Sequence record: MN871447.1
DNA: 64,000 bases
Reading direction: 5' to 3' (one strand)
Shown here: positions 9,786 through 16,430 of the stretch, one piece after another
How positions within the stretch are numbered: position 1 is the first letter of the stretch
Layout: each line of letters opens with the position of its first letter
Program-made: the position numbers and the translations under genes
The notes under the pieces: generated by a model
Database searches by the model: none
What the model was told of the DNA's origin: nothing
What the model saw: only the letters and a program-made list of their open reading frames with translations

Positions 9786-9964
9786 AATTAACAGCATAAA
9801 GAGAGGGTCTTTCGACCCTCTCTCGTACTGACTAATAGTCAAAAGAATCTCAGTGTTTAGCTCATAAATGACTTATCGCACATCATCCTTTTCATGTTAA
9901 GGTCGCCACCGAAACATGTTTATTCTCGGCTATACGAGTTAGCTTAATTTCCAGATTTTTAATA

Positions 9965-10497
9965 CCCGATCCCTTCTACGTTGGAGAAATGGATCGAATA
10001 GGGTGACGCCCCCGGACATTTTTGCCGGCTCCTTGCACCTCTTTCGCCGGAATCCCCGGCTGAGGTCTATGGTCTATGGCCGCCTATTTTCGCTCTAAGG
10101 CGTAGGCCGCCGATAATGACAGGCGTCATAATTAGTACCCCTCGGCCGATTCCGCGGCGCGTTTAACCGGCGGGTCGCCGAAGTCTTTGTCTCACGAGAG
10201 TTACCAATAAGTTATTGCTTATTGGACAAATCATTCGGATACGATTCCGAACTCCCTTCCTACCGAGCCTCTACTACCGAGCAGGAGTCGAACCTGCACT
10301 CTCTGTAAACAATATCACTTGACTAGAGCAGTATTGTAAAGGTTACGTGGACTTTAAAAGTGTAGAATGGGTATCAGTTAATTTGTTGCGGCCGCATACC
10401 GGTAACTGACTTCTTCTACTAGCGCCACCACTGACTCCGGTGTCTCGCCTAGTGGCGTTGTGCGACCCATTAACTCGCACTCTCTCTTTTAAGTCCA
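9965..10497 (-). ncRNA. Large structured non-coding region with a lone T-arm
   Basis: No ORF of 60 aa or more. 12-bp helix 10348-10360/10486-10497 encloses three hairpins. T-arm GCAGG-TTCGACT-CCTGC at 10281-10297. GC-rich hairpins at 9965-10200. Confidence 0.5.
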
Positions 10498-10501
10498 ACT
10501 T

Positions 10502-10609
10502 TGGTTGATAGGTACCGAATCGAACGGCTATCTCAGGCTCCCATGTTAAGGCGCCCCTCGTATGAGAGGGGGCCTAATGCCCGCGCTTTACCTTTAAGCT
10601 AGCCTATCA
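10502..10609 (-). ncRNA. tRNA-like gene with a 40-nt anticodon loop containing a hairpin (TGG/Pro-like if trimmed)
   Basis: Acceptor TGATAGG/CCTATCA plus A-CCA; D arm; anticodon stem CGGGC/GCCTG; T loop TTCGATT. Confidence 0.7.
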
Positions 10610-10734
10610 TTGAATAGGTTCCCTAGCACTCAATGAGTATCATCTACACCAGCAGCGCCCGGTGTTTAGCCGAGATGCAATTATGCTTCAATGGGTCGTA
10701 TTTAACGGCTCATTTATTCGTCGATGATTTACGT

Positions 10735-10833
10735 AGGGATAACCAGGCGACATCCCCCTCAGCACGCCGAGGTCAACTTTTGCCTTAGGCCAAGATTAAC
10801 TCTCCGCAACATTAAGTCGCCTGGTTAACCCCT
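10735..10833 (-). ncRNA. Structured element: long helix enclosing internal hairpins
   Basis: Perfect 12-bp inverted repeat TAACCAGGCGAC (10740-10751)/GTCGCCTGGTTA (10816-10827), extended by AGGG/CCCT. Confidence 0.45.
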
Positions 10834-10862
10834 GCCTTTAGTCTAAGTAAGATGTCATTATT

Positions 10863-10952
10863 TGGCAGAGAGTGAGAGATTCGAACTCTCGGTACCCTTT
10901 CGGATACATTCCCTTAGCAGGGGAACGACTTAAACCACTCATCCAACTCTCT
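10863..10952 (-). tRNA. tRNA-Ser: tRNA-Ser(GCT)
   Basis: Full cloverleaf, long variable arm, loop CT-GCT-AA, G73, encoded CCA. Confidence 0.95.
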
Positions 10953-10961
10953 ATTAAAATG

Positions 10962-11035
10962 CGACTCTTCCAGGACTTGAACCTGGGACCTACAGCTTAA
11001 CAGGCTGCCGTTCTAACCAACTGAACTAAAGAGTC
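10962..11035 (-). tRNA. tRNA-Asn: tRNA-Asn(GTT), CCA not encoded
   Basis: GACTCTT/AAGAGTC acceptor, loop CT-GTT-AA. Confidence 0.93.
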
Positions 11036-11041
11036 ATTATT

Positions 11042-11116
11042 TGGCGGTGCTACGGAGAATCGAACTCCGGTCTCCTCCGTGACAGGGAGGTATCCTTTCC
11101 GCTAGACGATAGCACC
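11042..11116 (-). tRNA. tRNA-Asp: tRNA-Asp(GTC)
   Basis: GGTGCTA/TAGCACC acceptor, loop CT-GTC-AC, G73-CCA. Confidence 0.95.
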
Positions 11117-11124
11117 TTTTTGTT

Positions 11125-11226
11125 TGGTTGTTCCCTTCCGGATTTGAACCGGCAACCTCCTGCTAAGCAGTGGGCGGCGCAGTGGCCGCCGGTGCAGGCG
11201 CTCTACCTAGTTGAGCTACGAGAACA
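11125..11226 (-). ncRNA. tRNA-like gene with a 30-nt anticodon loop containing a GC hairpin
   Basis: Canonical D arm GCTC/GAGC; anticodon stem CCTGC/GCAGG; variable AGGTT; T loop TTCAAAT; encoded CCA; inserted GGCGGC/GCCGCC hairpin. Confidence 0.75.
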
Positions 11227-11233
11227 TTGTATC

Positions 11234-11309
11234 TGGAGCAAGCAGCGAGGTTCGAACTCGCGACCTATGACTTGGAAGGACATCGCTCTACCAACTGAGC
11301 TATGCTTGC
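11234..11309 (-). tRNA. tRNA-Gly: tRNA-Gly(TCC)
   Basis: Cloverleaf, loop CT-TCC-AA, U73-CCA, one U-U mismatch in the anticodon stem. Confidence 0.93.
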
Positions 11310-11314
11310 GCTAA

Positions 11315-11389
11315 TGGCAGAAGCGCCTAGATTCGAACTAGGGGTACCGAGATCAAAGCCCGGGGCCTTAACCGCTTGGCTACGCTTCT
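11315..11389 (-). tRNA. tRNA-Gln: tRNA-Gln(TTG)
   Basis: Cloverleaf, loop CT-TTG-AT, G73-CCA. Confidence 0.93.
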
Positions 11390-11396
11390 ATAAAAC

Positions 11397-11480
11397 TGGT
11401 GGGGAAGGGTAGATTCGAACTACCGAAGCCGAAGCAGCAGATTTACAGTCTGACCCATTTGACCACTCTGGAACTTCCCC
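11397..11480 (-). tRNA. tRNA-Tyr: tRNA-Tyr(GTA)
   Basis: Cloverleaf with long variable region, loop CT-GTA-AA, A73-CCA. Confidence 0.95.
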
Positions 11481-11641
11481 TGAATTTGGGACCCGATTAT
11501 TTCAGCGCTGCATTCTTTACTCTCGGGCCAAGGAGCACTATTAGTTTCTTCTCAGGGCGTATGGTTTCCCTCTGAGACTTGCGCAATATTTGAACAGGTT
11601 GATTGTTGTCTTAACATTCCGGAGAGAAAGTTACAATCTTT

Positions 11642-11649
11642 GTTCATAA
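11642..11649 (-). promoter_or_regulatory. Putative late promoter TTATGAAC upstream of the first tRNA block
   Basis: Recurrent intergenic 8-mer, about 160 nt upstream of tRNA-Tyr. Confidence 0.45.
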
Positions 11650-11677
11650 GATATTGAATTACTTAAATTTTGATTAC

Positions 11678-12019
11678 CTACCGGAATTTCCCTACAGATA
11701 ACCAGATATCAGCAACCAAAAGAATTTGTCCGCCATATTGGGTAACGGTATTCCAACCGTTGCGTTTAGCGGCCGCATTGATCAGCGATAAAAATTGGTC
11801 TTTCCAGTGGCCCTGGTAAATCTGAGAGTGATGTATTATCCGTGTATTATTCGAACTCTCAATCTTATTAAGTTCTTCTGTTCCCCTGATCATATCGAAA
11901 ACGTCTTTCGACTTAATCAAATAAGCCGGATCGTTAATCGTTCGATCAGAGGCTAAAGGAAGACGATAAGAAATATGATCAATGTCTTCTTGACTGTGTG
12001 CAAATGTTACGTCATTCAT
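11678..12019 (-). CDS. Hypothetical protein inside the tRNA cluster
   Basis: 113-aa ORF with AAGG RBS. Confidence 0.65.
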   Translation of the reverse strand: MNDVTFAHSQEDIDHISYRLPLASDRTINDPAYLIKSKDVFDMIRGTEELNKIESSNNTRIIHHSQIYQGHWKDQFLSLINAAAKRNGWNTVTQYGGQILLVADIWLSVGKFR

Positions 12020-12098
12020 TTTACTTTTACCTTATACAAGTTAGTGGTCTAAACCGAAATAGGAAGACCAACAAAAACTGTGGGTGAATATAATGAAG

Positions 12099-12173
12099 TG
12101 TCCTCTACTGGATTCGAACCAGTGACCTACGGCTTAGAAGGCCGTTGCTGCTATCCTGCTGAGCTAAGAGGAC
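12099..12173 (-). tRNA. tRNA-Arg: tRNA-Arg(TCT); extra C in the D stem, CCA not encoded
   Basis: GTCCTCT/AGAGGAC acceptor, loop CT-TCT-AA; D-stem 3' strand reads GCAGC rather than GAGC. Confidence 0.88.
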
Positions 12174-12178
12174 GTAGA

Positions 12179-12263
12179 TGGTGCCCGGGGCGGGGTTCGA
12201 ACCCGCACGCGATTAAGCGAGGGATTTTAAATCCCTTGTGTCTGCCGATTTCACCACCCGGGC
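12179..12263 (-). tRNA. tRNA-Leu: tRNA-Leu(TAA)
   Basis: Type II cloverleaf, loop TT-TAA-AA, A73-CCA; resembles enterobacterial leuZ (recalled). Confidence 0.95.
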
Positions 12264-12268
12264 AAATA

Positions 12269-12344
12269 TGGTGGGTCCAGCAGGTTTTGAACCTGCGACC
12301 AAGCGATTATGAGTCGCCTGCTCTAACCACTGAGCTATGGACCC
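12269..12344 (-). tRNA. tRNA-Ile2: tRNA-Ile2(CAT), or Met(CAT)
   Basis: Anticodon arm GGCGA-CTCATAA-TCGCT and D arm match enterobacterial ileX as recalled. Confidence 0.85.
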
Positions 12345-15276: not shown

Positions 15277-15371
15277 TCTAGTGCTCTACCGGCTGAGCTA
15301 TCTGCCTCCAAGAAACACTCTGTGAATGTGTCCAGGTAGGCAGAGCGGAATTCGAATCCGCGACCTCTAGA
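15277..15371 (-). ncRNA. Circularly permuted tRNA-like module B
   Basis: TCTAG-AGGTC-GCGGA(TTCGAAT)TCCGC-TCTGCCT-[30-nt linker]-AGGCAGA-TA-GCTC(AGCCGGTA)GAGC-A-CTAGA. Confidence 0.85.
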
Positions 15372-15468
15372 ATTCTTTCCGTAAAAGAAAGAAAGTTCAG
15401 TCCGCTATTTTACTGTTTACTCTTTATCTTTAAGCGTGTGAGGCGATAAGATAAAGTTAACACTAACC

Positions 15469-15662: not shown

Positions 15663-16430
15663 TTAAGCAGTGAAGTTTTTCAGAATCACGTTGGTCAGCA
15701 CTTCGCCGATAGAACCCTGAACAACTTCGGTGCAGTTTGCACGCATACGTGCATTAGTGACTTCAACGATCAGTTCGTCGATATCACGCAGTGCGTTGGC
15801 TTTCTGCATCGGGGTGCAGGCGCCGGAATAGCTTTTACGGGTGAAGCTACCGATTACGACGGTGCTTTCCGATTCTTTCACCTGTGCAGGGTGGTGGTCG
15901 GTAGCCGGCGCCAGGATAACCGGAGTGAGCACTTTCTCGGTTTTCGTCGTGACTTCGTCCGTCACGGTACGGAATCCGTAGGTGCTGTTGCTATCGCGTT
16001 CCCATTGTTTGGACGAATCCAGAGTAGGGGCCGCGGCGATCAGTTTGCGCAGTTCCGCCAGGCGTTTTTCCAGGCCCAGGAGTTCATCTACCGGCACTCC
16101 AGAAACGAGGACTTCGCCTTTGAACATGATGTCTGCTTTTGCGACCTGGTTAGTCAGGGCTTTTTGCAGGCGAAGGTCTTCTGCGGTGGCGAAATATTCG
16201 AAGAGGTACTGCAGCGTTTCGGCTACAGTGGTGATCACTGCCTTGCTGGTACTTTCGCTTTTTTCGATCGCGGCGTTGGCGTCGTTGTCTTCGTGAAGTT
16301 TCAGGGTTTTATCAAACCCGCTGAAATATTCAGCCGATTTATTGAATTTTTTACTGGCGTCTTCGATCAGGACTTGCACTTGTTTGGTGCGAGTGGGTTC
16401 TGCTGCCAATACTTCGTGTAACTTAGCCAT
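15663..16430 (-). CDS. Uncharacterised 255-aa helical/coiled-coil protein with a beta-rich insert, linked to the permuted tRNA-like RNAs
   Basis: AAGGA RBS; TATG promoter motif; codon use by eye resembles the chimallin and PhuZ genes. Confidence 0.85.
   Translation of the reverse strand: MAKLHEVLAAEPTRTKQVQVLIEDASKKFNKSAEYFSGFDKTLKLHEDNDANAAIEKSESTSKAVITTVAETLQYLFEYFATAEDLRLQKALTNQVAKADIMFKGEVLVSGVPVDELLGLEKRLAELRKLIAAAPTLDSSKQWERDSNSTYGFRTVTDEVTTKTEKVLTPVILAPATDHHPAQVKESESTVVIGSFTRKSYSGACTPMQKANALRDIDELIVEVTNARMRANCTEVVQGSIGEVLTNVILKNFTA

Follow-up and report, generated by a model that had tools for sequence, protein, structure and literature searches.

A conserved tRNA-like gene with a hairpin in its anticodon loop in the tRNA cluster of a jumbo phage

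We analyzed a window of 64,000 nucleotides (nt) from sequence record MN871447.1, which over its tRNA cluster is 100% identical to the Serratia/Klebsiella phage KpLz_1_41, a jumbo phage of ~305 kb. Our subject is a tRNA-like gene at the 3' end of this cluster, termed copy 1 here, whose anticodon loop is expanded by a hairpin, together with a second gene of the same design, copy 2. The relatives of this phage include vB_KpM_FBKp24 (Maaswegvirus; FBKp24 hereafter), KpLz-2_45 (Siatvirus), Centimanus, MJ359 and LPKP23, and a single cluster holds all the tRNA genes in these genomes. In the window, nine ordinary tRNA genes (Met/Ile2, Leu, Arg, Tyr, Gln, Gly, Asp, Asn and Ser; ARAGORN, Rfam) occupy positions 10863..12344 on the minus strand. 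Read along that strand, the order is Met/Ile2, Leu, Arg, an open reading frame (ORF) of 113 codons, Tyr, Gln, Gly, copy 2, Asp, Asn, Ser, a 253-nt spacer and copy 1. Copy 1 is the only Pro-type gene of the cluster, which has no other Pro tRNA. The MJ359 record labels both copies 'tRNA-OTHER'.

Copy 1 folds as a cloverleaf with a long anticodon arm, and all of its parts lie on the minus strand. The whole element, 108 nt including an encoded CCA (10502..10609), is delimited by ARAGORN run with introns allowed, by Infernal and by the cloverleaf minimum-energy fold. The 5' strand of the acceptor stem, UGAUAGG (10603..10609; ARAGORN, fold), forms seven base pairs with CCUAUCA, the first of which is U1-A72, and this 3' strand is followed by the discriminator A and the CCA (10502..10512; sequence, ARAGORN). 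A linker of three nucleotides, C-U-A (10600-10602), leads to the D arm (10585..10599), which is made up of GCUU, the loop AAAGGUA with GG inside, and AAGC, followed by G26; both the linker and the D arm are recovered by ARAGORN, the fold and Infernal. The T arm (10513..10529; ARAGORN, Infernal) carries a canonical UUCGAUU loop on a stem that has either an A.A mismatch at its base or only 4 bp. The mismatch at the acceptor/T junction is accordingly drawn as A49.A65 by ARAGORN, and as C7.A66 with a 4-bp T stem by Infernal.

The anticodon stem pairs CGGGC (10579..10583; ARAGORN, fold) with GCCUG (10534..10538; placed by sequence comparison with relatives). These 5 bp enclose 40 nt, not 7 nt: a 5' linker AUU (10576..10578; sequence, ARAGORN), whose A and U stand at the would-be positions 32 and 33, a GC-rich hairpin (10549..10575), and a 10-nt 3' linker, UAACAUGGGA (10539..10548; sequence, ARAGORN), which is invariant across relatives. 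The hairpin comprises 10 bp, 4 + 6 with one bulged C, and reads AGGC-CCCCUC, loop UCAUAC (6 nt, 10560-10565), GAGGGG-C-GCCU. The would-be Pro anticodon UGG lies within the 3' linker (10541-10543) and is followed by the equivalents of G37 and A38. The RNAfold minimum-energy structure is this same cloverleaf, with pair probabilities of 0.90-0.99 in the hairpin.

Default ARAGORN does not call copy 1, though it calls the nine other tRNAs of the window. Once introns are allowed, the program reports tRNA-Pro(tgg) at c[10502,10609], the exact coordinates of copy 1, with an insert of 33 nt. Infernal aligns the gene end-to-end to the Rfam tRNA family, placing an insertion of 36 nt in the anticodon loop, with a score of 34.4 bits where the gathering score is 29. 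The gene of KpLz-2_45, identical in sequence, likewise scores 34.4 bits; copy 1 is absent from the lists of two larger cmscan runs over the window. Across the whole window, the intron-allowed search makes two intron calls, copy 1 and copy 2, both in the tRNA cluster and on its strand. The same search returned no calls in 20 shuffles of the 64-kb window (1.28 Mb) and no intron calls in unrelated loci that total 556 kb and contain 21 tRNAs, which places the copy 1 signal well beyond chance. These data bear out the description in an earlier note, made from the sequence alone, of acceptor, D, T and CCA elements around an anticodon stem that encloses 40 nt. Its structural wording stands with two amendments: the linker between the acceptor and D stems has three nucleotides (C-U-A), not two, and the acceptor/T mismatch has to be added.

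A search tolerating up to three mismatches finds the hairpin nowhere else in the window or the 305-kb genome, which rules out a mobile GC-rich repeat and leaves the hairpin without a dispersed-repeat origin. ARAGORN excises 33 nt (10543..10575, with boundaries ambiguous by one U) to restore a 7-nt loop, AUUGGGA, in agreement with the earlier proposal that removal of 33 nt regains a TGG (Pro) anticodon. What remains, A-U-UGG-G-A, is a textbook tRNA-Pro(UGG) loop with U33 and G37. A tRNA-Pro(UGG) is carried by phages T4 and T5, by Morganella phage MP1 and by an IMG/VR phage contig (L061). Copy 1 shares with the ordinary genes of T4, T5 and MP1 the AU / UGGGA remnant, A73, the encoded CCA and a location in a tRNA cluster; it differs in the 33-nt insert, U1-A72, the extra acceptor-D nucleotide and the mismatched T-stem base. 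Because the loop remnant is perfect, this tRNA is commonly phage-borne and the cluster lacks any other Pro tRNA, descent of copy 1 from a phage tRNA-Pro(UGG) gene by insertion of 33 nt between positions 33 and 34 is well supported.

The present-day body is nevertheless not that of a normal tRNA-Pro, as judged from U1-A72 and the irregular acceptor/D/T junction. G72 and A73 are major determinants for the E. coli ProRS. C1-G72 and A73 occur in four of four phage tRNA-Pro genes (T4, T5, MP1 and L061), whereas copy 1 has U1-A72 and A73. We therefore rejected a canonical elongator tRNA-Pro: the gene has the cloverleaf and scores above the Rfam threshold, but as encoded it has neither a 7-nt loop nor C1-G72.

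Copy 2 (11125..11226, minus strand; intron-allowed ARAGORN, Rfam tRNA 38 bits) repeats the design and is present in all relatives. Its 5-bp anticodon stem encloses a GC hairpin of 6 bp with a 6-nt loop, joined to the stem by linkers of 3 nt (5') and 9 nt (3'), and it has U1-A72, G2-C71, A73 and CCA in common with copy 1. It lies between Gly and Asp, 7-8 nt from the ordinary tRNAs on either side. The only loop that excision could restore in copy 2 reads GCU and has a pyrimidine at position 37, and the body lacks the long arm that bacterial tRNA-Ser has. When the two halves of a gene were compared separately and locally to trace parentage, the D arm of copy 2 proved identical to that of phage tRNA-Trp genes and its body resembled T4 tRNA-Pro. 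The 3' linker contains a second, exact copy of the hairpin-loop sequence CACUGC, and the two are similar to CCUGC, the anticodon stem's 5' strand, which suggests that the insert arose by local duplications. Two further observations concern this gene. In its minimum-energy fold the insert pairs with the 5' strand of the T stem and the cloverleaf does not form. The Centimanus gene has Watson-Crick pairs where copy 2 of the window has two junction mismatches, and it has A in place of T54 and T in place of A58.

Copy 1 is conserved among relatives, a check that the earlier note had proposed. Blastn finds it in 13 of 13 related phage records, and it is also present in two metagenome-derived contigs (IMG/VR contig L010 and metagenome contig L063), at 97-100% identity throughout. 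FBKp24 and Centimanus are the most telling cases, with both flanks unalignable right up to the borders of the gene and only three differences within it. Two of these changes fall in the hairpin loop (10565 U to C and 10561 A to G) and the third, 10535 U to C, converts a G.U of the anticodon stem to G-C. A fourth variable site, 10529 A to G in contig L063, affects the already mismatched base of the T stem, and the 3' linker with the would-be anticodon is invariant in all relatives. As far as the sequences go, this is the pattern of purifying selection on the gene as a folded RNA.

The composition of the cluster points the same way. Among eight cluster variants compared, only copy 1, copy 2, Met, Leu and Asn occur throughout, and Tyr, Gln, Gly, Asp, Ser and Arg are each lost in at least one. 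The clusters are mosaic: HNH endonuclease genes have taken the place of Arg-Tyr-Gln in KpLz-2_45 and separate Met from Leu in Centimanus, the Gly gene of FBKp24 is a 25-nt remnant, Centimanus has no Asp and no Ser, and in some relatives tRNAs have been swapped for alleles 82-88% identical.

These comparisons bear on the possibility that copy 1 is a tRNA-Pro pseudogene, killed by the insertion and persisting in a young clade beside its neighboring tRNAs. All known carriers are close relatives with clusters 90-100% identical, selection is hard to prove from four variable sites, and the remnant of the anticodon loop is still perfect, as it would be soon after an insertion. A dead gene does not readily account for flanks that have been replaced or have diverged beyond alignment up to the borders of a gene still 97% identical, nor for the loss or swapping of working neighbor tRNAs in several relatives, which has never befallen copy 1 or copy 2. 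It also leaves unexplained two different tRNA bodies with the same unusual design in one cluster and, as described below, the same design under clear structural selection in T5-like phages. We regard a pseudogene as quite improbable.

Carriers outside this clade did not emerge. Searches of IMG/VR and metagenome contigs with exact patterns of the D arm and of the T arm and acceptor returned the same clade and no distant carriers. The neighboring NMT1-like protein, used as bait, retrieved mostly loci at ~75% protein identity, on contigs that we took as unrelated genomes and that have no such gene, and a DUF7873 protein used as bait for distant carriers retrieved three loci only.

A precedent for the design is found in phage T5, a siphovirus of ~120 kb belonging to a different phage family. 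Its RefSeq record (NC_005859) lists, in the tRNA region, rna1 (144 nt) and rna2 (125 nt) as 'tRNA-like stable RNA with unknown functions', among several miscellaneous RNAs that include the 719-nt RNAX directly after a tRNA. The stability of rna1 and rna2 is taken from the annotation of that record; our literature searches returned no paper on the T5 stable RNAs. With introns allowed, ARAGORN places an insert of 40 nt in rna1, directly behind the anticodon stem's 5' strand in a Leu-type cloverleaf, and one of 48 nt in the anticodon loop of rna2, which it likewise draws as a cloverleaf. Like copy 1, both therefore lie in a phage tRNA region on the tRNA strand and form a cloverleaf with a structured insert in the anticodon loop; each insert starts at the 5' strand of the anticodon stem or immediately behind it, leaving the old anticodon in the single-stranded 3' linker. 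The novelty implied by the earlier note was thus overstated, as the design has an old and obscure precedent.

Blastn with rna1 found matches in 487 T5-like records, down to 74% identity, and we aligned nine sequences spread over that range. RNAalifold recovers a cloverleaf and a two-stem insert hairpin from these nine sequences. Pairs changed on both sides number 11 of 38 overall and 4 of 8 in the insert hairpin, 97.4% of alignment cells are paired as against 39-50% in slid registers, and on four of five measures the observed value exceeds that of all 500 shuffles. Hardly any variation is seen in the 8-nt hairpin loop, whereas the would-be anticodon strand varies (UUAAAA, UCAUAAA, CGAAAAC). 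A covarying hairpin beside a drifting anticodon strand indicates that, in this family, the hairpin has been selected and the old anticodon has not.

The likeness to copy 1 has limits. Rna1 has a Leu-type body, a long variable arm, no encoded CCA, a two-stem insert and an invariant 8-nt loop. Across its phage family, rna1 is conserved and compensatory changes have kept its hairpin, whereas the copy 1 stem is invariant in a shallow clade. No copy 1-clade record appears among the matches listed for rna1 (the best 30 of 487). As a separate observation on the loops, that of T5 rna1 (L071:10502-10645), ACAUCCRC, is nearly invariant in T5-like phages of Escherichia, Salmonella and Klebsiella. The pattern N-C-A-U-N-C fits its first six bases and both copy 1 loops (UCAUAC, CCAUGC), which may be coincidence.

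The restored Pro loop raises the question of splicing. In one form of this explanation, the 33 nt would be a true intron, cut out by a protein endonuclease new to bacteria and phages and sealed by an RtcB-type ligase of phage or host, to give a working tRNA-Pro(UGG) for CCA and CCU codons. Excision does give a canonical 7-nt loop with U33, UGG, G37 and A38. Such a tRNA, usual in phages (T4, T5, MP1, L061) and otherwise missing from this cluster, would have codons to read, CCU and CCA making up 46% of the Pro codons in the 57 ORFs of the window. A candidate ligase, RtcB, is available in two of the relatives, FBKp24 and KpSz_1. Conserved 'enigmatic introns', for which no mechanism was given, have been reported in the tRNAs of Lak megaphages (Devoto et al. 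2019, PMC6784885). By the description in that report, these resemble copy 1 as over-long tRNA genes of huge phages that need intron-aware predictors and whose inserts are identical across samples; they differ in belonging to an unrelated lineage with Bacteroidota hosts and in that some inserts are absent from related genomes (PMC6784885).

Copy 1 also shares a short anticodon-loop insert, the removal of which restores the loop, with the intron-containing pre-tRNAs of archaea and eukaryotes, which are processed at a bulge-helix-bulge (BHB) by EndA and RtcB or Trl1. The insert element CUCYCAUR is complementary to CAUGGGAG in the anticodon region, perfectly over 8 bp in FBKp24-type copies, where both loop substitutions strengthen the pairing; in this the FBKp24-type copies recall the pairing between anticodon and intron in BHB-type pre-tRNAs. 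In the window version, this alternative pairing was rejected, being 5.5 kcal/mol worse than the hairpin with a pair probability of zero.

Taking a BHB as two 3-nt bulges on opposite strands 4 bp apart, we find none in copy 1. The 3-nt AUU is on the wrong strand and faces a 10-nt strand, and the 4-bp helix is followed by a single bulged C, a 1-nt bulge; the earlier note was right to see no BHB at the junction. The insertion point is 33/34, not 37/38, and the host is bacterial. The EndA family (PF01974) had no match in the whole genomes of two relatives, with control matches in four archaea, and Rnl2 likewise had none in the two genomes; the Rnl1 search of the two was uninformative, as no control genome matched. 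RtcB occurs in two of seven relatives searched, FBKp24 and KpSz_1, as a full-length RNA ligase gene scoring ~401-402 bits (FBKp24 record L005, positions 174958-176106; KpSz_1, L009, 223605-224753). It is missing from this phage's own record and from the four others, all of which keep copy 1, and its presence is thus sporadic. A group I intron was rejected, as the ribozyme core alone takes roughly 200 nt or more and the insert has 33 nt. No Rfam intron or ribozyme family matched copy 1, and literature searches returned no paper on spliced phage tRNAs with short hairpin inserts.

Further features speak against splicing: U1-A72 in place of C1-G72 and the junction irregularities do not suit a standard elongator tRNA, copy 2 would regain a GCU loop that its body does not match, and the T5 record annotates its RNAs of this design as stable at their full length. 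Splicing by an endonuclease and an RtcB-type ligase is in our judgment unlikely, while remaining worth weighing. A related and rather improbable version would have the hairpin be the intron of an unrecognized protein-based pathway that follows a non-BHB rule (5-bp stem, 3-nt 5' linker, GC hairpin) and relies on a ligase of host or phage to yield a functional tRNA-Pro(UGG); maturation could perhaps then be gated during infection.

The surroundings of copy 1 raise a different possibility. The spacer that separates it from Ser (window 10610-10862) measures 253 nt here and ~115 nt in FBKp24 and in IMG/VR contig L010, which amounts to roughly 138 extra bases in the window lineage. Downstream lie ~680 nt without a credible ORF, then a terminator-like GC hairpin followed by UUUAU (9797..9822, minus strand; read by eye and not listed by a consensus scan), which is likely to mark the end of the transcription unit. 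The FBKp24 record has an annotated terminator ~530 nt downstream of its own copy 1. Within the ORF-poor stretch (9797-10501, minus strand), positions 10281-10297 read as a T-arm-like hairpin (GCAGG UUCGACU CCUGC). Relatives share the distal part of the stretch at 85-100% conservation, but not the first 150 nt after copy 1; as a whole the stretch recalls the 719-nt RNAX of T5, directly after a tRNA.

Copy 1 could on this evidence be a processing or punctuation signal, the tRNA shape of which recruits RNase P and the 3' trimming enzymes to release or stabilize flanking non-coding RNAs, namely the upstream spacer of 115-253 nt and the ~680 nt downstream, with the hairpin incidental or acting as a nuclease barrier. 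The gene is indeed set apart from the tightly packed tRNAs, the long ORF-poor stretch does end in a terminator-like hairpin, and T5 has its RNAX. An ordinary tRNA would suffice for such a role, however, and the conserved hairpin is left unexplained, as is copy 2, with ordinary tRNAs 7-8 nt away on both sides. The segment just downstream (10350-10501) is moreover not conserved in FBKp24 or Centimanus. We consider a processing signal very unlikely.

We favor the interpretation that copy 1 is the gene for a stable, unspliced, non-decoding tRNA-like RNA, to which we assign a probability of about 0.55. This reading is based on the sequence and fold, the conservation, the known splicing parts not found and the T5 parallels; from these we infer transcription, end processing, stability, the lack of decoding and a binding partner. 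The earlier note had left the choice between a non-decoding mimic and a substrate of some splicing route. The mimic is now the better supported of the two, through conservation, membership of the core of the cluster and the parallel with T5 rna1 and rna2, and the splicing substrate is weakened by the failure to find an endonuclease or a consistent ligase in the relatives searched, the lack of a BHB and of C1-G72, and the copy 2 loop.

In the mechanism that we propose for the stable RNA, copy 1 would be co-transcribed with the tRNA cluster. Because it resembles a tRNA in its acceptor stem, D-loop GG, T arm and T loop, we propose a 5' cut by RNase P followed by 3' trimming to the encoded CCA, as for the neighboring tRNAs. 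The RNA would adopt an L-shaped fold and keep its insert, making the anticodon arm ~10 bp longer. With the old anticodon placed in the 10-nt strand of an asymmetric internal loop, it would presumably not read codons in the ribosomal A site. It might then act through its tRNA-shaped body, with the hairpin as a specific handle, by binding a tRNA-handling factor of host or phage. The decoy for anticodon nucleases or tRNA sensors suggested earlier is speculation. The partner that we would guess first, a host nuclease or sensor directed at tRNAs and titrated by the RNA, is likewise speculative and, even if the stable-RNA reading holds, on the doubtful side.

Several observations weigh against this interpretation. 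Removal of the 33 nt yields a perfect Pro(UGG) loop, as expected of a recent insertion or a real intron, and the equivalent remnant has drifted among rna1 relatives in the T5 family, unlike the intact one of copy 1. Copy 1 has no sequence homology to T5 rna1 or rna2, blastn finding only its own 13 records, so that it is grouped with them by design and not by descent. The clade is shallow, with four variable positions, no hairpin-stem pair changed on both sides and invariant linkers; the evidence for selection therefore covers the whole gene, not the hairpin by itself.

Phage T4 offers a looser comparison. Its RNAs C and D are stable, with roles unknown as of a 2010 review (PMC3014915). RnaC and rnaD (species 1 and 2) resemble copy 1 as small stable RNAs at the 3' end of a tRNA cluster, and rnaC, the sole extra call of intron-allowed ARAGORN in the T4 region, also has a tRNA-like T arm and end pairing. 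It differs in its length (139 nt), its large non-tRNA 5' part and the lack of a neat anticodon-loop hairpin. RnaD is not recognizably cloverleaf-shaped, and neither RNA has sequence similarity to copy 1. The same search made no extra calls in the clusters of three other phages (Huxley, MP1 and Croc_ER14).

Two further tRNA-shaped elements were noted in passing. One, of 85 nt, lies in the window at 15321-15430 on the minus strand, just downstream of a DUF7873 gene (15663-16430, minus strand) whose 255-aa product matches the Pfam family with E = 2.7e-72. Its FBKp24 counterpart, 98% identical, is called 'tRNA-Stop(tta)' by ARAGORN (L065:11013-11097), which makes no such call in the window, and the element scores 26.8 bits against Rfam tRNA in FBKp24 and Centimanus. 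The other is the annotated 'tRNA-Ile(aat)' of Erwinia phage Huxley (L068:5308-5404), of an unusual length of 94-97 nt, which default ARAGORN calls as intron-free.

Our data reveal the same design, a hairpin for the anticodon loop with the old anticodon relegated to a linker, on different tRNA bodies in a jumbo phage unrelated to T5, and this recurrence argues for a real function. Copy 1 and copy 2 are among the constant members of a tRNA cluster whose other genes come and go, and they form a small, well-defined gene pair for deletion or pull-down. If their partner is a tRNA-directed defense nuclease or sensor, such RNAs would be RNA-based counter-defense factors, which, if true, would bear on how Klebsiella phages intended for therapy cope with host defenses.

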